This document shows, in pieces, positions 11,964 to 64,000 of a stretch of 64,000 nucleotides of DNA. Numbering within the stretch: the first letter of the stretch is position 1; every line of letters begins with the position of its first letter. The position numbers were made by a program, and so were the translations under genes. The DNA is from Chrysemys picta bellii (taxonomy: Eukaryota): the NCBI RefSeq assembly GCF_011386835.1, contig NC_088793.1, positions 128,464,001 to 128,528,000 on the forward strand, in the 5' to 3' direction. The notes beneath the pieces were generated by a model. The model did not search any database and was not told the origin of the DNA. It worked only from the letters and a program-made list of their open reading frames with translations.

Positions 11964-12930
11964 TCATAGAATCATAGGACTGGAAGAGACCTCAAGAAGT
12001 CATCTGTGCCAGTCCCCTACACTCATGGCAGGACTATGTATTATTTCTAGACCATCCCTGACAGGTGTTTGTCTAACCTGCTCTTTAAAATCTCCAATGA
12101 TGGAGATTCCACAACCTCTCTGGGCAATTTATTCCAGTACTTAACCACACTGAGAGGAAGTTTTTCCTAATGTCCAATATAAACTGCCATTGCTGCCGTT
12201 TAAGCCCCTTGCTTAAAGAGGCTAAGGAGAACAATTTTTCTCCCTCCTCTTTGTAACAACCTTTTATGTATTTGAAAACTGTTGTCATGACCCCTCTTGT
12301 TCTCTCTTCTCTAGAGTAAATGATTTTTTCAATTTTCCCTCATAGGTCATGTTTTCTAGACCTTTAATCATTGTTGTTGCTCTTCTCTGGACTTTCTTCA
12401 ATTTGTTCACATTTTTCCTAAATGTGGCCCCCAGAACTGACCACAATACTCCAATTGAGGCCAAATCAGTGTGACGTAGAGCAGAAGAATTACTGCTTGT
12501 GTCTTGCTACAACACTCCTGCTAATACACCCCAGAATATTTGGGGTTTTTTGCAACAGTGTTACACTGTTGACTCATATTTAGTTTGTGATCCACTATGA
12601 CCCCCAGATCCTTTTCTGCAGTACTGTACTCCTTTCTAGGCAGTCATTTCCCATTTTGTGTGTGTGCAACTGATTGTTCCTTCCTAAGTGTAGTACTTTG
12701 TATTTGTCCTTATTGAAGTTCATCCTATTTACTTCAGACCATTTCTCCAGATCATTTTGAATTTTATTCCTATCCTCCAAAGCACTTACAATCCCTCCCA
12801 GCTTGGTGTCATCCACAAACTTTAAAAGTGTACCCTCTCTGCCATCATCTAAATCATCAGTGAAGATATTGAACAGAATCAAACCCAGAACTGATCTCTG
12901 CGGACCCCACTCAATATGCCCTCCAGATTG
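11964..12930 (-). mobile_element. CR1 LINE 3' fragment, degraded
   Basis: TCATAGAATCATAG tail. RT C-terminal peptides (LFNIFTDDLD..KFVDDTKLGG; FKYIKGCYKEEGEKLFS) with frameshifts. Confidence 0.9.
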
Positions 12931-53600: not shown

Positions 53601-56600
53601 TGATATCCAACCTGGACCTCCCCCACTGCAACTTGAGACCATTGCTCCTTGTTCTATCATCTGCCACCACTGAGAACAGCCGAGCTCCATCCTCTTTGGA
53701 ACCCCCCTTCAGGTAGTTGAAGGCTGCTATCAAATCCCCCCTCATTCTTCTCTTCTGGAGACTAAACAATCCCAGTTCCCTCAGCCTCTCCTCATAAGTC
53801 ATGTGCTCCAGACCCCTAATCATTTTTGTTGCCCTCCGCTGGACTCTTTCCAATTTCTCCACATCCTTCTTGTAGTGTGGGGCCCAAAACTGGACACTGT
53901 ATTCCAGATGAGGCCTCACCAATGTCGAATAAAGGGGAACGATCACGTTCCTCGATCTGCTGGCAATGCCCCTACTTATACAGCCCAAAATGCCGTTAGC
54001 CTTCTTGGCAACAAGAGCACACTGTTGATTAATAGGTAGTGCTCCCTACCCAGGGGCAGAACCCTGTAGAATGTCCAAAAGCTTATGTTTTCTTGCAAAA
54101 GGTCTGCTTGAATGCCCAAAGCTGCAAGCATTCTTCTCAGAAGCTCCTGATGATATAGTCATCTAGAACTGGAGAAGTGTCTGGGATCACAGAATTATCA
54201 GGCAAGGAGGCGGGACGATTAACAGGAGCAGATGGATCCTCCTATGGTAAAATCAACTCCTAAGGCAATAGTTCCTCCTGATGCACAGGCTGGTCATGGG
54301 GAACAGTGTCTTTCTGTATCTCCAAAGCAGGCAACTCCAGAAGCTTTGTTACCGTGTGCTCTGGAGAGCTTCCTCTAGTCTAGACCAGTGATCAGGCTCT
54401 GGACAAATGAGAGAACCCAGAGGCTCCAAAACAGCCCCAGGGAAGAGCACAGGGCATCTAGAATCAGCAAGAATTCAGCCACAGTGATCTGTCCCTGCTG
54501 TCATAAGAGCTGTCCTCCTTCTGGAGGCAGTCTGCTAGACCATCTGTGCCTGGGAGGAGATGGTGAACTATTGGAAGACTCCAAACCAGTCTGTGAGGAG
54601 TCACCAAAATAGTCAATTGGCATTGGGGGTGCAAAGCCTGATGGGACTAGTAGACAACTTGAATGATCTCACCCATTGTGAAGAGGACAACATTGGTACT
54701 GAAGTAAGTATGGTAGTCAGTACCATAAAGGCTTCACAAGAAGTTGATAGCACAGCATCTTGAGGTAGTGCTGAGAAAGACCCCATAGCCAGGACCATAG
54801 TAGAAAGTGGAGTCAGTACCAAGGAAGATGACCATAAAGATACTGAGAGTGTCAGTGCTGAGAATGTGTTGTTTCAGACTCTGTGCCCTGGTATCAAAGT
54901 TGGCATCAGAGAAGGAGCCAAGCCCCCACCATGCTTCTTAGCTGGTACTAGTCAATACAACTAATAGTTTCTGCACTGGAGCTGATGACAAAGACAGGCC
55001 CAGTACTAAAGGAGGTGCTGACAAAGCAATCATCTCCTGAACCACAGGAAAGTCTGGAAGTGGAAGACAAAGCAAATCCTTTGCTGTGTCATAAGTTTGT
55101 GGGATTGTAGGTACCAAAGAGATCAGCGCTGAAACAGTGTGTGTTGATCCCAGACTCAACAGTTGTCCTGCAGAAGTGCCAGTCGATAGTACATTACTAA
55201 AGTCATCCCAGTGTGGTGCCAGGGAGTCACAGGTTGACAGCCCAGCTGTATGTTGGCTATTAGATGAGTCCTCCAAGGATCTCCTTATAGCCAGATGATG
55301 TTTGAGTCCTTTTTTGAAGAACTCTTCAACTTTGAGTGACCTCAGTCTAACTTGTGTATCTTTTTCTGGGGAGGTCCTGGAGAAGAACAACTCCTTCCTC
55401 CATGGAGAAGAGTCCAGGGGATCTACTGAAGAAAACTGCACACACACTGATAGCCAGCATGTGAGAAGACAAATGCTCCCCTGGGAGGCCAGGAGCTGAC
55501 AGAGGCCTCATTGCCTGCTCTATCAGATGGTGCTTGAGATGCAGGAAATCTGTTCTTTTCCTGAACTGTGGCAAATACTGTACCTCTCCTTAATATGCCC
55601 CTCCCAGAGGCACAAAAGGCAGCCCATCTGGGGGGGGAGGGGTACATTGTGTAAACACTTCAGAAGATGGGCAGTGATTAAAGCCCAGAGAGCACCACAT
55701 AGCAACAGTGCCTAGCACTGAAACTGAAAGAATAAACTAACTAATTGGTACTAATAGCTAACTATTAAAAATAAAGGGAAAGCTAAACTAGCTAACTATG
55801 CAGATGAAAAACACAGCGAGGTAAACCACATGGGAAGCTCCAAATCAGGCCACAGGTGGTGAGAAGGACCTGAGGGGGGCAGGGTGCTGCTGCCCTTATA
55901 TAGCCTCAGGAGGAACCACGAAGATGTGCAGCAGGGGTGTCAAACTCAATTGCACAGGGGGCCAAAACTCAAAACTCGCGGGCCGAACAGTATAACCATT
56001 TATTTAACAGACTAAATATTTATGTTTTTTAACCATTAATATGAACCAAAATACAGGATATCATTCCAAAATAAATACATTTCAACTTAAAATATTTTGC
56101 TCTTCATAAAAAAATATCCTGTCAATACAATACATTCAAAATCTGTACATGCTGGAATATTAAAAAATCTGAAAATATAAATAAAAAATTGAATTTAAAG
56201 CAAAAGTATAATCGTAACAAATCATAACATTCCATTTTCTTGTCCTATTTAGTCAGAGCCTGATACTTGGAGTCTTTTCTTTGCAACAAGTTCGTTTATG
56301 TTTGGGGTTAGGTTCTGTGTTGTGAAGATTCTCAGGATCGATTGCAGGTGTTCATCAGTGAGGCGACTCCTGTGTGACGTTTTGTTAATTTTCATCACAG
56401 AGAACAGCTGCTCGCACAGATATATGCTGCCAAACATGGACAGGATTCGAGCCGCATGTTGGCGGAGCTGCGGCATCGCTTCAGGAATGAAGCGAGTGAA
56501 CTGTGCTGGCCCCGCAGTGTCGTACTTTGCCTTCAGTGTCCCGTTACATTGCAGTTCTATCAGCTCCATCTGCATTTCTACAGGTGCGGTTTCCACATCG

Positions 56601-59600
56601 ACTGCAAATGGGTTGCGAAGCAGCTCGAAGTTACTTTTCTGTGCCTCAAAGTCACTGAAGCGCCGTGCGAACTCAGTGCGCAGCGCGCTGAGTTTTTCAG
56701 CAAAGGTGGCATTTGGGAAAACTGTGGCACTTTCTTGGTTCCGTATTACTTGGCAACAGGGAAAGTGAGACAAGTTGCATTGGTGCATTTGTGTCTCCCA
56801 TAAGCGCAGCTTCACTTGAAATGCCTTCACTGCATCATGCATATCGGTTATTATGTGCTCCCGTCCCTGGAGTTGAAGGTTTAAAGCGCTAAGATGCGAC
56901 GTTATGTCAGCCAGGAACGCCAACTCACATTTCCACTTTTCATCCCGCAGAACTGTGCAGTCTTTCCCCTTACTGTCCATGAACTGGCAGATTTCCTCTC
57001 GCAGCTCAAAGTGTCTTTTGAGAACTTTTCCCCGACTTAGCCACCGGACCTCCGTATGATATGGCATATCGCCAAACTCGCTATCTATTTCCCGCAGAAA
57101 AGACTGGAATTGGCGGTGATTTAAACCGTGGGCTCTGATAAAGTTGACGGTTTGTGTTACAGTGTTCATCACATGATCCATTTTTAGGACTTTAGCACTC
57201 AGCGATTCCTGGTGTATGATGCAGTGATACACTGTCAACTCACCGGCACAGTTCTCCTCCCGCATCTTTGAGCGCATCCTTCCCACCAGTCCATTTTTTT
57301 CACCACACATAGCAGGTGCGCCATCTGTTGTAAGTCCAACGAGTTTTTCCCACGGCAGTTTCATGTCGGTTACACTTTGAAATACATTTCCAAAGATGTC
57401 TTCTCCTTTCGTTGTCCCGTGCATCGATTTAATGTCCAGTATTTCCTCTGTTACGCACAAATTGGAATCCACACCACGGATAAATATCGCCAGCTGTGCA
57501 GTGTCAGTCGCGTCAGTAGTTTCATCCACGGCAAGGGAGTATGCAACAAAATCTTTTGCTCTTTCAATCAACTGTGTTTTCAAATCAGTCGCCATCTCAC
57601 AAACCCGATTAGCAACAGTGTTTCTGCTGAGGCTTACATTTGCAAACGCTCGCGTTTTATCTGGACAAAGGACGTCGCACACTTTCATCATACAATTCTT
57701 TACGAATTCCCCCTCGGTAAACGGCCGTCCTGATTTGGCGATCTCTTCGGCCACAATGAAACTTGCTTTCACAGCAGCTTCACTTTGTGATTTTGCTTTG
57801 GTGAAAAACGTCTGCTGGGATGTCAAATTCTTCTTCAACTCCTCTACCTTTTGTAGCTTCTGTCCTGCGCTCAGGTTTTTGAATTTGTTCTCATGTTTCG
57901 TCTCGTAGTGCCGTCTTAGGTTATACTCCTTCATTACAGCGATATTACTCCCGCAAAGGAGACACACTGGTTTACCTGCAATTTCAGTAAACATATACTC
58001 ATTCTCCCACCGGCTTTGAAAGCCTCGGTTTTCAGAATCAATTTTTCTCTTGGCCATTGTTGGGGTCTAGCTTTGATTTGAGATTAGCGTTGTATACATC
58101 AACAGACCGCGAACTTGAACCGCGGCTTGCCGTTGGCGGCAATTGCACTGCATCATGGGATTTGTAGTGTGTGTTATTGGGGCGTCATATCACAGGGCCA
58201 TTAAAAACAGATATATAAAACGATTTCGCGGGCCGGATATAATTGTATGGCGGGCCGGATGTGGCCCGCGGGCCTTGAGTTTGACACATGTGATGTGCAG
58301 GGTCACATGCATTCCCGACAGTACTACTGCAGAAAACTCTCCAGCTGTGGTGTGCTGGGCATGCAGACACCTGAGTGAAATACATGCATGCAACATATTT
58401 TGAAGAACAATTTAATCAAATGGTGTTGCTATTCTGAAAACACATTTTTATAGTAAAACTCAATTTTTAACATGTTCAAAAAAAGACTATTTTGAGATCA
58501 ATTTAGCTGTTTCCTCAGTCCCTAGCTCCAATTTCTGGTTGCAGGGATAGTTTAGGGCAGATAGAGTCATCAGCTGCTTAATCGGGCAGCAGAATGGAAC
58601 GAGCACCTGAGCAGAAAGTGGCCCAGCTGCTAGGCTGTGATGCTAAGAGGTGAATAAAAATAACTAAGAATATGGAGGACATACAGATATGCTGAAGAGA
58701 TTAAGTCACAGAAAAGACCTATAAAGATGTCCAGTCAGGGGCTCACAAAAACTTTCATTTAAGTCCTTGGAGAGAGGAAAGGACATTCTCTGAGTAGGTT
58801 ACATGAGGCAATGTTAAAAATATCAGTGGCAGCCAGCAGCCTGTCTACACTAAAGCTCCCAACAATGCTAATACCAATTGCGCTGAACTATTGTTACCAA
58901 CGTTGGGAAATTGTTAGAAATTCTCCTTATGCTGGAAGGGCCATTGAAGGAGGAGGCGAACCTAAGTCTTTTAAAGATCTCTGGCCATGGACCAGTTTCA
59001 CTAAGTCTTATCTTTATCATTCTCTGTACCAAAAACTTTTCAATGGTCATAAATAAGTCTACTACTACGAAGAAATGCAATTACTAATACCATTTTACTT
59101 CATATTTGCTGTACTTTTGGCATTGTAAGTAGTGTTAGTAAATGTTATAGCAATCATTTTCTCTGATTGTGTTACATTTTAAGTGTGGTCCCTTTCAGAG
59201 CATCTCTCAAAAGTACATGACCCAATTTAGAACCAGTCTATTGTTGTGTATGGAGCTATTCTGACCTCATTGGCTGGGAAAACAGAATCAGATCCCCGAG
59301 CACAGAGAACTTTTGTTCCAAGACAAGCCAGTAACACTGTACCATTGTGAGGTAAACATGAAGGTCTATGGAAGATTCATGCTTCAAGGGTAAGTACTGA
59401 ATGAAGCTGGCATTGAGGTGCTTAAGAGAGAAGCTTGCAGCATTGTCAACTTTTCTTTTTTTGAGTAACAAGATTTCAGAGGGTTCTGGAGCCTGTCTTG
59501 TAATGATACTAGAACCTCCAGGCCCCTCGTGAAGTTCAGCCCTGCTGAAAGCCAACAGTCTCTTCGCTACAGCTTGCTATTCTCACAGGAAGGAGCAAAG

Positions 59601-60977
59601 AACCCAGCAGTTCATCACAATTCTGCTCCCTTCACCTGTGAGAAACAGAATGGTGCCTCTGCTCCTCTTCCCACTCTCCACTATAGCACCTGGCCTAGGA
59701 AGGGGCAGGGGGGGGGTAAGGACCACCCCTGGAGCTGCCCCCATCCCAGCACGGGAAGTGGAATCCTGTTGCACCCCCCAAGCCTAAGGTGAATTACCCT
59801 AGGAAGAGCTGATATGAGGCTGCGGGGTGGTACAGAACTGATGGGAGGATTGCATGACCGGATTAATTTCTGGGCAGGAGACAGGCAGACATGGGAGTGA
59901 GAGTTCCTGCAACATGGGCCAAGATCACCCCATATATTTGGGACACTGGGCAACACTAACAGTTATGCACACACCCTGGGGATCTGCAGAGTTAAAAAAA
60001 ACGTAAAACACAGACCACAAAACCACACAATATAATTTTTTTTTAAAGTAGTCACATTTCTGAAGGCCAATCTTGTGATTTCTTGGGCAGCTGCCCTAGA
60101 TGCCAACTTCAAGTGGTGCCAAGTTGCTGTGCTGCTTCCCCCCCACCGCCCCTTTTTGCTCTGCTGCTGGGGGGAGAGGGATGAAGACACAGTGTTTTCT
60201 TCCCTGGTTTGGAAAAGGGCTAGGGCCTCTCCTGAGTGAGGTAGAACAACCTGATGTGCGAGTGTGTGTCAAGTCCCAGAGGGTGGTGATACAGCAGGAG
60301 AGGGATTAGTGTGAAGGGTCTTATAAAAGACCAGGTTTTGATTAACACTGATCAAGCAGAGCAGACAGCTTATGGATCCGAAACCTTGGCCAGAAGCAGG
60401 TCATAACCTGCGACCAGGAGCCAAGCACAGTCCATGAGCAGTAGTGAGTCTCAGAGGAGCATCTAAATTAAGAACAGGAGGTGCAATGAACCAGCCTACA
60501 TACCAGGAAGCTGGCGGTCAGGGTGCACCGACTCCTGCCGCAGCCCAGGCCCGCTCCCTGCCGCATGGAGGCGCCTATGACATTTTGCAGAGCCGGAGGT
60601 AAGCTGGGCCTGGGCAGACAGGCAGGTGCGCTCTAAATAGGCACGTGCTGGAACCTCAGCCTCCCACCCGCTCTGCGCTAAGAGGCAGGAGACGCCCATT
60701 GACTCCCTCTTCCCTCCCCCCGCCCCGGGAGGCTAATCGCAAGTGATATGCACTCAGAGCGCGAGGACCTGCGCCACAGGTGCTCGACCCGCCACTCCGG
60801 TCCAAGCGCGTGCACAACTCCCCTCCCGTCCACCTCCACCTGACCGCACCGTGGCCCAGCTCCCCAATCCGCGCCTGCGCACTGCCTGCTGCTCACGTTG
60901 TCTTTCTCGAACATGCTTAAACGCCGCTCCCCCTTCCCCCCCGAAGGAAGTTTCGACGCCTTCGCGTGTTTGTCCAT
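44496..60977 (-). CDS. DYNLT2: Dynein light chain Tctex-type 2 (TCTE3); 4 coding exons, 570 nt, 189 aa
   Basis: Exons 60897-60977, 46257-46475, 45206-45364, 44496-44606, all phase 0 GT-AG. Motifs ERRLSMFEK|[47 protein letters not shown]. Confidence 0.92.
45206..45364 (-). CDS. DYNLT2: DYNLT2 exon 3
   Basis: [53 protein letters not shown]; |GTGAGT. Confidence 0.93.
46257..46475 (-). CDS. DYNLT2: DYNLT2 exon 2
   Basis: [10 protein letters not shown]...[32 protein letters not shown]; AAG| and |GTAGAG. Confidence 0.9.
47132..48220 (+). mobile_element. Solo LTR (Gypsy-like)
   Basis: TGT...ACA termini; 5-bp TSD GGATC/GGCTC with one mismatch. Confidence 0.75.
48810..49100 (-). mobile_element. L2 LINE 3'-end fragment
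   Basis: CTAGGTGCTGTACAAACAC..GACAGTCC..CCCTAAAGAGTTTACAATC, a typical L2 tail in reverse. Confidence 0.55.
51659..52270 (+). mobile_element. Solo LTR-like insertion within the DIRS RT region
   Basis: TGTAAT...CTTACA termini; DIRS-like sequence on both sides. TSD not clear. Confidence 0.5.
53397..54028 (-). mobile_element. CR1 LINE 3' fragment, well preserved
   Basis: Uninterrupted 170-aa RT C-terminus ([25 protein letters not shown]...) and TCATAGAATCATAG tail. Confidence 0.93.
55932..58292 (-). mobile_element. Full-length autonomous-type hAT DNA transposon (Buster/SPIN/Charlie group), 2361 bp
   Basis: 18-bp imperfect TIRs CAGGGGTGTCAAACTCAA / CACATGTGTCAAACTCAA; perfect 8-bp TSD ATGTGCAG (55924-55931 / 58293-58300); subterminal GCGGGCC repeats. 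Confidence 0.96.
56249..58057 (-). CDS. Intact hAT transposase, 602 aa (GTF2IRD2/SPIN-like)
   Basis: BED finger [16 protein letters not shown], catalytic D (AVDETTD), D (TTDGAPAM), [14 protein letters not shown] (YLCEQLFS) and hATC tail RSRLTDEHL. No stop codon or frameshift. Confidence 0.96.
   Translation of the reverse strand: MAKRKIDSENRGFQSRWENEYMFTEIAGKPVCLLCGSNIAVMKEYNLRRHYETKHENKFKNLSAGQKLQKVEELKKNLTSQQTFFTKAKSQSEAAVKASFIVAEEIAKSGRPFTEGEFVKNCMMKVCDVLCPDKTRAFANVSLSRNTVANRVCEMATDLKTQLIERAKDFVAYSLAVDETTDATDTAQLAIFIRGVDSNLCVTEEILDIKSMHGTTKGEDIFGNVFQSVTDMKLPWEKLVGLTTDGAPAMCGEKNGLVGRMRSKMREENCAGELTVYHCIIHQESLSAKVLKMDHVMNTVTQTVNFIRAHGLNHRQFQSFLREIDSEFGDMPYHTEVRWLSRGKVLKRHFELREEICQFMDSKGKDCTVLRDEKWKCELAFLADITSHLSALNLQLQGREHIITDMHDAVKAFQVKLRLWETQMHQCNLSHFPCCQVIRNQESATVFPNATFAEKLSALRTEFARRFSDFEAQKSNFELLRNPFAVDVETAPVEMQMELIELQCNGTLKAKYDTAGPAQFTRFIPEAMPQLRQHAARILSMFGSIYLCEQLFSVMKINKTSHRSRLTDEHLQSILRIFTTQNLTPNINELVAKKRLQVSGSD
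60897..60977 (-). CDS. DYNLT2: DYNLT2 exon 1 ([27 protein letters not shown])
   Basis: ERRLSMFEK matches the ERRPSMFEK motif of TCTE3; donor AAC|GTGAGC; phase 0 join to exon 2. Confidence 0.88.
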
Positions 60978-61148
60978 GGCTTCCGCCCTGGCGCGTGGCG
61001 TCCCCCAACCGCCACTCAACGGCCACTAAGCAGTTCCAGCTTCGCGCTGCGCAGCCCTCGCTCAATCAGCAGCGCCAGGGCGAGGCTTTCCCGCACGTGC
61101 CATGATGTCGTCATTGGCTGCGGACGGCAGAGCGTCACTGGTTGTGAG

Positions 61149-61179
61149 ATGGCAGGAGAGGAAGGCGGAAGTAGGCGAG
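61149..61179 (+). other. Possible ERMARD first exon (ATG GCA GGA GAG...GAG|GTAGCT)
   Basis: ATG and donor in the island downstream of the DYNLT2 start; no exon 2 found in the window to confirm. Confidence 0.25.
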
Positions 61180-63247
61180 GTAGCTGCGCGCGGTCCGGGT
61201 GGGAGGAGGCGCGGTGCCTTTTCGGAGCGTGGGTTCCGCGCGGGCTGGGGCGGGCGATGGGGAGGGAAGCTGAAATACAGCGACGCGCCCTTCTCCGCTG
61301 GGGGTAACGTGCTTCACGCCCCTGCCCCCGATCTCTTGGGTGGCCCCGGCTGGAGTCACCCGCTGTCAGCCTCGCTGCCCCCCGTGTGGGCTGGGCGTGG
61401 GGTTCCGGCCGGGATTGGATCCAGGCGGCAGCCCCGGCCGGGATAACGGCTCCTGCTTCCAGGAAACCGTCGCCGTGCTCAGTCCCGCGGCCCGGTTAAC
61501 CGGATCTATTGGGGGTGGAGCTCGTGTGTGTGACACTGGCCATAAAGGTGCTGCGCCGCCATCTCGCTCCCTGGGACGCGGTCCCCTCGGGGGTTAGTTT
61601 CTTAGCTGGTGGTTAAAGCGTTTTTTCAGCGCTCTGTGGGTGTCGTTGAAACAGACATTAAACTCCTTGAGAGATTGACAGTCTAACCCTAGGAGAGATC
61701 ATATCGGGATATCTCCGTGATGCTTAAACTGGGCTAGTTTGAGACATAGCAGGTCCTGACTTGGTGAGGAGCATATGTCACTTCCAGGAAACCGGACTTT
61801 GACTTACATTGTTAAATACTACATTAAAGTGAGCATAGGGAGCAGCTTTCATTTTTAATATACTTAAAATGAATAAAGCGTGTAGGAAAAATGCACAAGG
61901 TAAAATGTAGTCTGCTAAGTACACTTTTTAACAGTGTGTCATCTAGTAGTACAGAAAGTTAATGTTTCAGGAAAATAAATATACTACCACTGGATAGATT
62001 GCTTCTGAACTTACCATATGTTTAGAGAGTGCTTCTAGGAATTTTGGTCAGTTAGATCCTTATAGTGAAAGATTCTGTCCTTTTCCGAGGAAGTGGCCCT
62101 TTTATTTCTTCCTCACTTACTTTAAGGAATGAGCCACTCTTAGAACAACACACCTTTGGAGGGTCTGTCGTCTGTTTGGCTGTCCTTCCTTAGATTCAGC
62201 TGGACATTCAGTAGCACTGGTGGAAGGCCCAGTAAAGTTGACATGACTGGGATAAAGCGGCCATTCCCTACTGCTTTACTGGGTATATCTTCACTGCAGA
62301 GTGATTTGAACCCAGTTTACCCTAAAGTGGGTGTGAGCATCACCACTGCAAAGCTATGCCCACATTACCATGTCACTGTTTCTGGACTTGCCTTTGTGTG
62401 TCAGCAGCATATGCCACCGTTCTTTGTAACAAGGTGCTCTAGAATTCTTTCCCAGTCAGTTGTGGGAAAACTTGTCTATCCTTCAGGAGGAACTGTGGGA
62501 AAGCATTGGATAATTATCAGCACTAGTGTGATTTTGCTTGTCCTCACTATAAAGTGTATGGGTTCCAGCCAGAATTAAATCAGAACTTGGACTCTAACCC
62601 AGCTGTGCTAGCTAGCTGGGGAAGAAAGCACCTCCAAACTCAAGTAAAAAGTTCTTGTGTATGAACCATAAGAGCATTGGGTTAAAACTTGGGTAATAGC
62701 AAGGGTTAACTCTGGGGTGAATATATTGGGGTATATGCTGGGACAGAGGGCTGAAGAAAGAAGAAAAGAGCAGAAGTTTTTCTTGGCAAGCACATATATG
62801 AGAGTGCACAAAAGTACCTTTAAACAAGGTGGGAGGTGTTTACAGGCTACTTGCTGCCTTTGCCCTAAATTTTGTCTACAGAGGAGTGGGGAGAAAATAA
62901 CTTCTTAAACATCTAGAGAAAAGCCTGGAAGCACAAATAAACGTGTGTCAATTCCTTACTCTCTTCTTATATGAGGGAGCAATTTTTATTGGATACCCTC
63001 CCTTCTGGCCATGCATAATACGTGAATTTCCCATACTAGTTTCAAGTACTAGAAGTCTGGACTTCTAGGAGCCATCTATCTGAAACTATTCTCCAGACAT
63101 GAAAGAACCCTCTATACAAGCTAAAGTGGACTTTTTACTGTTTAAAGTACGTGCAGAAAATGGTTCAGCCTGGTAACTTTTATTGCCTGGCTCTCTAAGG
63201 GAAAAATATAATGAAGTTAATATACAGCATAGTAAACTTCTATCACC

Positions 63248-63268
63248 TGTGTGTGTGTGTGTGTGTGT
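63248..63268 (+). repeat. (TG)n microsatellite
   Basis: TGTGTG... run seen directly. Confidence 0.9.
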
Positions 63269-64000
63269 TTCCTGTTGATTTACTAATTGTAAGTACAGTT
63301 CTCAAACAATATATGTAAAACAGTGTATGGCAATATTTTTGTATGTTTAATTTTTATAATTAATAAATCTTTTAAAATCTGTCACCCCTTTTCCCAAACA
63401 AAATCAAATGTTTGCCACATTTGCCTCTGATTTAGTTGGAACTATAGGAATTGCCATATTGGATTAGACTAATTGTCCATCTAGTCCAGTATCCTGTCTC
63501 TGAGAGTGGCCAGCAGCAGATGCCTAATGGGGGGTGGGGGGAAGCCAGTACCCCCGGTAAGCAGATGTGGAATAATCGGTCCCCATGAAAGTCTCATCCT
63601 AATAGCAAAAGAGCAGTTTAAAACATGAACCATGAGATTTTAATCCCTTCTAGAACTGTTTGCAATAATTGTTATAACTTGGTATTCTTGTTACTAAATG
63701 TTTGGCCTTAAGAAAGATTGATAAGAGTCAATATCCCATGACAGTGAGTTCCATGATCTAATTATCAGTTTTGAATTTGCCATCTTTCATTTTCCGGAAT
63801 GTCTCCTTTTGGTAGTGGGGTCTTTCTCATGTAGCTCCTAGTTAGTAGTTTCTCACCCCTACTAATTATTTTATATATTTTTATCAGACCCACTTTTGTT
63901 CATTTCCTTGCTAAAGGAAATTATCTTAATCTTTTCAATGTCTTCATAGGAGAGTTTTTCTATGCCTCTGATTATAGAGTTTAAGGCCAGAATGGACCAC

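Follow-up and report, generated by a model that had tools for sequence, protein, structure and literature searches.

A 64,000-nucleotide stretch of the genome of the turtle Chrysemys picta bellii (assembly GCF_011386835.1, contig NC_088793.1, positions 128,464,001 to 128,528,000; hereafter the window) carries at 55932-58292 an element of 2361 bp with its transposase gene on the minus strand. We are confident that it is a full-length hAT-6_XT, a cut-and-paste transposon of the Buster family, that it was inserted recently and is unfixed in this emydid turtle, and that its family came by horizontal transfer. The evidence lies in the anatomy of the element, in multiple independent insertions, in an empty site at the same locus and in near-identity to a copy in a fish. 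The element is a copy of a family already published: hAT-6_XT was described by Hassan, Galbraith and Adelson (2024, Mob DNA 15:7; PMC11008031) as horizontally transferred and possibly still active, so that neither the family nor these two properties are new. What we add to that work is an empty site within the species, a depth ratio, full-length copies in C. picta and a new fish host.

Element ends and independent insertions

The element is flanked by two perfect copies of the 8-bp target site duplication (TSD) ATGTGCAG and is bounded by terminal inverted repeats (TIRs) of 18 nt, which match at 15 of 18 positions, share a perfect core and start with CAG and CAC (Table 1). The probability that an 8-mer would match by chance at set positions is ~1.5e-5. 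A first reading of the window from its letters alone (the sequence-only reading) had named both termini and the perfect TSD. The ends are now also fixed independently of the TSD, because three other full-length copies with their own flanks and TSDs match exactly 55932-58292. These copies lie at three further loci in the C. picta and Trachemys scripta assemblies, are 99.2-99.7% identical to the element and have flanks unlike those in the window. Their TSDs are likewise perfect and 8 bp long (AGTTAGAG, GCATACAG and AGCTAGCA), and the termini are identical in all copies. The element therefore has the features that define the hAT superfamily, namely an 8-bp TSD, seen here at four independent insertions, and short TIRs beginning with CA. 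The two TIRs differ near their tips (GGG versus CAT), and the earlier guess that this asymmetry is a feature of the family was correct, as it is identical in all copies and in the published Xenopus, Malaclemys and Trachemys sequences. Additional copies or termini of the element were sought across the window, and none was found besides its own two ends.

Repeats of the TCGCGGGCCG type are present in the subterminal regions of both ends and are likely, by prediction, to be the motif bound by the transposase. The 3' untranslated region (UTR) has a G+C content of 28%. The element contains 102 CpG dinucleotides, with an observed/expected (o/e) ratio of 0.887 compared to 0.316 in the remaining window, in agreement with the CpG abundance remarked on in the sequence-only reading. 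Two other CpG-rich stretches in the window, 8001-12000 (o/e 0.61) and 60001-64000 (o/e 0.54), are probably CpG islands of host genes.

The nearest database protein, also from C. picta bellii, is 99% identical to the window transposase, and its cluster also holds two T. scripta proteins. The open reading frame (ORF) is intact in three of the four sampled copies: the window copy, the second C. picta copy (L001), which has four private amino-acid changes, and one of the two T. scripta copies (L003). The annotated protein at L003 is just 420 aa despite the open ORF, and at the other T. scripta locus (L002) the NCBI gene model spans a 1-nt insertion by means of a spliced 613-aa prediction. Any two of the four turtle copies diverge by 0.30-0.47%. 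Nearly all differences are singletons, and the non-synonymous and synonymous rates (dN and dS) are about equal; the window copy and L001 are separated by 0 synonymous and 5 non-synonymous changes, and dN is close to dS in the other pairs. Low divergence, mostly in singletons and with dN close to dS, is what a recent burst and subsequent neutral decay leave behind. The window copy differs from the family majority sequence at 3 of 2361 bases (56214, 56424 and 58082), the same three private sites being found in the copy alignment and in high-depth contigs. A variant at element position 1520 is common to the window copy and the C. picta copy.

The insertion is not fixed in the species

Contigs from sequence runs were placed on 54300-60200 of the window: X25, X37 and X40 are from the window's species, X37 and X40 being different samples, and X28 is from a relative. 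This assignment follows the share of the words of the left flank and junction that a run contains: 0.90-0.97 in the best runs of conspecifics, and about half in several relatives. In all four runs, contigs join 55922 directly to 58292, skipping 2369 bases, which correspond to the element plus one TSD copy. At the joint, 9 letters fit either side, a single ATGTGCAG is present and a footprint is absent. The empty-site contig of X37 (7131 nt) has flanks with 0 differences from the window and that of X40 (7140 nt) has 3 differences, while the flanks of X28 differ by ~1.3-2%, in line with its being a sister species. Each of the three conspecifics thus has one or more empty alleles, in contigs that give neither zygosity nor allele frequency, and the insertion is unfixed in the species. 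Since the joint is a clean, footprint-free single ATGTGCAG and the relative has the same state, the empty site represents the ancestral condition rather than the product of an excision. The sequence-only reading had called the insertion very recent and had proposed looking for an empty-site polymorphism in reads; with contigs in their place, the empty site in three conspecifics and the sister species, together with a copy only 3 bases off the majority, moves the insertion from one that looks young to one that is not fixed.

Among the contigs listed, all four runs yielded only the empty form, and none bridges from flank to element. Such a result would also be expected if a repeat copy had been misplaced at this locus by assembly error, or if the element were a contaminant. 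We consider this very improbable. The perfect 8-bp duplication repeats exactly the single-copy sequence of the empty site, which is the signature of real transposition, and the three private substitutions indicate that the copy is not a pasted majority sequence. Short-read graphs, moreover, normally break at junctions into high-copy repeats.

Immediately around the insertion, window 55836-55923 and 58321-58365 draw numerous further contigs, which have loose ends and joints with a short side (such as 55879->58330). As these loose-ended contigs lie on both sides, the transposon seems to have landed within an older interspersed repeat.

A complete hAT transposase

The intronless transposase ORF encodes 602 aa and is the sole ORF of more than 205 aa in the whole window. 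In an alignment of 36 homologues with 48-83% identity (A1), the residues C32, C35, H50, H55, D178, D245, C279, H282, R338, W339 and E549 are invariant or at least 90% conserved; within the zinc finger, C32, C35 and H50 are invariant and H55 is at least 90% conserved. The zinc finger (C32/C35/H50/H55), the D178/D245/E549 triad, C279-x-x-H282 and R338-W339 are all intact in the window copy, so that the open 602-aa transposase with DDE, CxxH and RW motifs proposed from the letters alone is borne out. As for the BED finger of that proposal, an N-terminal C2H2 finger is present, which Pfam names SPIN-DOC C2H2 (PF18658) rather than BED. The DUF4371 match in Pfam fell below the cut-off.

The AlphaFold (AF2) model built from alignment A1 has a mean predicted local distance difference test (pLDDT) score of 83.3. 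The 12 best matches of the model among solved structures were all of the Hermes transposase of Musca domestica, with a best E value of 3.6e-10. Together with the conserved residues, the predicted fold provides the DDE RNase-H-like domain, inserted helical domain, CxxH and RW elements of a hAT transposase. Hermes has the same architecture, with a template modelling (TM) score of ~0.5 over 530-570 columns, but is an Ac-family member with 13-14% identity; in the copy of PDB that was searched, no other hAT transposase has a solved structure. Hermes was reached only through the fold search, because a sequence search of PDB found no transposase, the lone match being a chance one to an RNA polymerase (E 0.57).

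Could the ORF be a domesticated host gene rather than part of a transposon? NCBI labels the Chrysemys and Trachemys copies 'general transcription factor II-I repeat domain-containing protein 2A-like', and the nearest fold is that of GTF2IRD2. A domesticated gene would occupy a fixed single-copy locus under purifying selection and lack TIRs, whereas the element has intact TIRs and TSD, has copies at unrelated loci that are 99% identical through their non-coding ends, shows dN close to dS among these copies and is missing from its site in conspecifics and the sister species. We therefore rejected this explanation, which is extremely unlikely.

Identity with hAT-6_XT and placement on the Buster side of hAT

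The termini of the window element are also those with which the published hAT-6_XT_MTT and hAT-6_XT_TSE sequences open. A 31-mer of these sequences is matched exactly at window 55977-56007, for which the chance expectation is none. The comparison covered the termini and this 31-mer, as the paper's sequences were machine-read PDF text with errors. The termini CAGGGGTGTCAAAC... and ...GTTTGACACATGTG are common to the window element and to hAT-6_XT (Repbase, Xenopus tropicalis; turtle versions _MTT, _TSE and _CPB). The reported turtle hosts are Malaclemys terrapin, Trachemys scripta elegans, Chrysemys picta bellii, Dermatemys, Sternotherus and Mesoclemmys, and the others are five fish species and the frog Xenopus tropicalis (PMC11008031). 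In turtles, hAT-6_XT was reported to have <1% divergence, to keep its DDD/E and RW residues and to have insertions that are not common to different turtle species (PMC11008031). Our element resembles it in its emydid hosts, in copy divergence below 1%, in its intact DDE and RW residues and in the kind of evidence for horizontal transfer, and the Trachemys and Chrysemys copies that we found are likewise <1% divergent and at non-orthologous sites. Two differences from the published account stand out. Presence and absence were tested there between species only, whereas here the empty site was found within a species. In C. p. bellii assembly 3.0.4, 200 hAT-6_XT fragments were reported and a full-length copy was absent, for which the authors suggest incomplete assembly (PMC11008031), whereas L001 (GCA_011386835.2) and the window are full-length open copies.

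Among reviewed proteins, the transposase is most similar to GTF2IRD2 (40% identity), followed by EPM2AIP1, ZMYM6, ZBED5, SCAND3 and FAM200A-C (25-30%), compared to 13-14% for maize Ac; the range of identity to GTF2IRD2, EPM2AIP1, ZBED5, SCAND3 and FAM200 is 25-41%. E values for ZBED5, SCAND3, FAM200 and GTF2IRD2 were 1e-24 to 1e-40, versus ~1e-12 for maize Ac. ZBED5 is Buster1 (PMC3606216), and the Buster TSD consensus is nnnTAnnn (PMC3499496). A central TA was present in three of the four TSDs sampled, a small sample (n=4). Because the protein is nearer to the Buster-derived proteins than to maize Ac, and given the TSD centres and the fold, within hAT we assign the element to the Buster side. 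The 'Buster/SPIN/OC1 group' of the sequence-only reading is therefore correct only as far as the Buster family, the reviewed proteins closest to the transposase being GTF2IRD2, EPM2AIP1, ZBED5, SCAND3 and FAM200; the element is hAT-6_XT and not SPIN or OC1.

SPIN and OC1 (OposCharlie1) are likewise Buster-family hATs with repeated horizontal transfer among tetrapods (PMC3499496, PMC11008031). They are, however, separate families; the window element is already accounted for by hAT-6_XT, and its closest relatives are GTF2IRD2-like teleost transposases. By published description, TcBuster, LlBT (Lota lota) and AnBT resemble the element in having a single ORF, a length of 2.4-3 kb, a transposase of ~600 aa, short TIRs and 8-bp TSDs, which in those elements lean to nnnTAnnn, and fish Buster elements such as LlBT are also young, with near-identical copies (PMC3499496, PMC12637253). 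For TcBuster, LlBT and AnBT, transposition was demonstrated in cultured cells, whereas the window element is known here from its sequence. The domesticated Buster-type genes of mammals (GTF2IRD2, EPM2AIP1, ZBED5, SCAND3/ZBED9 and FAM200A-C) have the same whole-length fold, domain order and Pfam families. In contrast to the window element, which is multi-copy and unfixed with complete catalytic residues, they are fixed single-copy host genes without TIRs.

Evidence for horizontal transfer

An annotated protein of the characiform fish Hoplias malabaricus is 93% identical to the window transposase. A 5'-truncated, frameshifted hAT-6_XT copy in this fish (L004) covers element positions 404-2361, has its end at exactly the same terminus and is 98.3% identical by BLAST. 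Leaving aside two private sites of the window copy, 23 substitutions in 1950 bases remain, which corresponds to 98.8% identity. Eleven of the 23 are CpG-to-TpG/CpA changes on the fish side, and the fish copy also has a 3-bp and a 5-bp deletion. The Hoplias locus (13.8 kb) is gap-free and includes a FISNA-NACHT-PRY/SPRY gene, a fish NOD-like receptor (NLR) gene, ~4 kb from the copy. Turtle contamination was considered as its source and rejected, as the copy is truncated and frameshifted, has its own CpG decay and is contiguous with the fish NLR gene. The fish and turtle lineages split more than 400 million years ago. Because the copies are 98.8% identical across lineages this far apart, their sequences are compatible only with horizontal transfer. 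Hoplias is not among the hosts given in the text or supplements of PMC11008031.

The transposase tree groups the window protein, with 100/100 support, with a metagenome sequence and two teleosts, Leuresthes and Scophthalmus maximus, the second of which is a published host of hAT-6_XT (PMC11008031). Snake sequences lie outside this clade. That the element was horizontally acquired, as the sequence-only reading had suggested, is now backed by the 98.8% identical fish copy, by the teleost grouping in the tree and by the same conclusion in PMC11008031.

The tree of GTF2IRD2-like transposases also contains highly supported groups that are discordant with their hosts: bat with frog, bryozoan with cichlid and bichir, and stingray with rockfish. 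This suggests that there may have been many further horizontal transfers in the wider group. Related full-length elements with 80-83% DNA identity were found in a JGI metagenome (L005; 3300043395) and in Logan SRR23651569 (L006). Their 5' terminus is conserved and their ORFs are open. The samples are environmental or unlabelled, and the hosts of these elements could be donors or vectors.

Table 1. Coordinates of the hAT-6_XT element, its parts and its other sampled copies. Window positions count from the first letter of the window; copies L001-L004 are numbered within their own extracted loci.
Feature	Sequence	Position	Strand	Basis or remark
Full-length hAT-6_XT element	window	55932-58292	-	three independent copies end identically; 31-mer match to hAT-6_XT_MTT
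Left TSD copy ATGTGCAG	window	55924-55931	.	sequence; lone copy in empty-site contigs
Right TSD copy ATGTGCAG	window	58293-58300	.	sequence
TIR at transposase 3' end, CAGGGGTGTCAAACTCAA	window	55932-55949	+	13-nt perfect core 55937-55949 / 58275-58287
TIR at transposase 5' end, CACATGTGTCAAACTCAA read on minus strand	window	58275-58292	-	repeat comparison of ends
Subterminal repeat TCGCGGGCCG	window	55976-55985	+	recurs at 58226-58235 and 58248-58257
Subterminal repeats TCGCGGGCCG and TGGCGGGCCG, 22 nt apart, then palindrome GGCCCGCGGGCC	window	58226-58274	+	repeat search
AATAAA polyadenylation signal	window	55999-56004	-	245 nt past stop codon, 67 nt from element end
Transposase ORF, 602 aa, intronless	window	56249-58057	-	ORF scan, Pfam, AF2 model, fold match
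N-terminal C2H2 zinc finger (SPIN-DOC / BED-like), residues 14-73	window	57839-58018	-	Pfam PF18658, E 4.7e-9, above cut-off
Catalytic D178 codon, motif AVDETTD	window	57524-57526	-	homologue alignment
Catalytic D245 codon, motif TTDGAPAM	window	57323-57325	-	homologue alignment
Catalytic E549 codon, motif CEQLFS	window	56411-56413	-	invariant in homologue alignment
Codon 545, Ile here, Thr in all other copies	window	56423-56425	-	private substitution at base 56424
L001, full-length copy, 2361 bp	C. p. bellii GCA_011386835.2, CM062320.1	5766-8126		TSD AGTTAGAG, open 602-aa ORF
L002, copy	Trachemys scripta GCA_013100865.1	9025-11385		1-nt insertion near codon 4
L003, copy	Trachemys scripta GCA_013100865.1	5766-8118		8-bp deletion in 3' UTR, ORF open
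L004, hAT-6_XT copy	Hoplias malabaricus GCA_029633855.2, CM080106.1	7267-9216		5'-truncated, frameshifted

Copy abundance and possible activity

In the three conspecific runs, contigs of the element were far deeper than the flanks of the insertion: 7251-7334 versus 13.4 in X25 (ratio ~545), 7946-10197 versus 21.9 in X37 (~360-465) and 6472-7420 versus 19.2 in X40 (~340-385), all as ratios of single-contig depths that give the order of magnitude only. In the relative, X28, the depths were 2047-3146 and 65-69 (~30-46). This suggests hundreds of near-identical copies in the window's species, which fits the 200 fragments in the older C. picta assembly and the authors' suggestion that this assembly is incomplete (PMC11008031). 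In X25, the terminal bin 55876-56072 has a summed depth of 13228, against 7334 in the internal bins beside it, a nearly twofold difference. The doubled depth may come from shorter non-autonomous derivatives that share this terminus, like those of Etheostoma in PMC11008031, or may be the mere summing of variant contigs. Of the element's words, 74% were present in one run recorded as RNA and 97% in several runs that are presumably RNA. With hundreds of genomic copies, these words could be carried-over DNA, and the RNA evidence is weak.

The open ORFs of the window copy, L001 and L003, contig depths hundreds of times those of the flanks and an unfixed insertion make it plausible that the family is still mobile, and from them we infer possible present mobility of the window copy or its sister copies. 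Germ-line transposition at present or in recent times would find support in near-identical copies numbering in the hundreds and in segregating insertions. That hAT-6_XT transposes in the germ line of this emydid turtle, either now or at some time within the species' coalescent time, and that the Hoplias copy marks a Neotropical freshwater link in the transfer network, is a proposal that we make tentatively, as a good possibility that still falls short of probable.

Several points weigh against the element as read here, or against its activity. I545 is the only private amino-acid change of the window copy; it replaces a Thr that at least 90% of homologues keep, four residues before E549, and may impair the transposase of this copy. 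The Pfam match to the hAT dimerisation domain (PF05699) scored 18.1 bits, below the cut-off of 21.4, although structural alignments still span the C-terminus. The centre of the window TSD is TG/CA and not TA. Contig depth is not copy number, and the contig data are compatible with a heterozygous insertion in the individuals examined. De novo insertions, excision footprints and strand-resolved transcripts were not seen among our data.

These points bear on a second explanation of the same data, in which the family is inactive, the transposases of all copies lack catalysis and the window copy is neutral, recently dead and still segregating. The differences between copies do look neutral, with only non-synonymous changes between the window copy and L001 and dN about equal to dS elsewhere, and lesions or private changes are present in L001 (four amino acids), in L002 (the insertion near codon 4) and in the window copy itself (I545). 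Turtles mutate slowly, so that divergence below 0.5% can still represent millions of years, a point also made in PMC11008031. On the other hand, the insertion is unfixed, at least three of the four sampled copies keep their ORF open, no catalytic or zinc-finger residue has been lost and, to judge by the depth ratio, near-identical copies may number in the hundreds. We regard an inactive family as possible but rather doubtful.

A model for the element and its significance

Under the reading that we prefer, a recent and unfixed hAT-6_XT insertion, the family would have reached emydid turtles by horizontal transfer from an aquatic vertebrate pool. By analogy with other hAT elements, the 602-aa transposase would bind the termini and the GCGGGCCG subterminal repeats via its N-terminal zinc finger and DNA-binding region, and its RNase-H-like site (D178/D245/E549) would cut both ends of the element. 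The element would then have been inserted at a target cut with an 8-bp stagger, whose repair would yield the ATGTGCAG duplication.

Turtle genomes evolve slowly and their repeats are mostly ancient, and active cut-and-paste transposons are rare in amniotes. If hAT-6_XT does transpose in emydid turtles, it would join a very small number of DNA transposons naturally active in amniotes. Were the family still moving, vertebrates would have in it a natural transposon of the Buster type. It would then be of interest to turtle population genetics and to work on transposon transfer between species in fresh water, and could serve as a reference point for TcBuster-type gene-transfer vectors.

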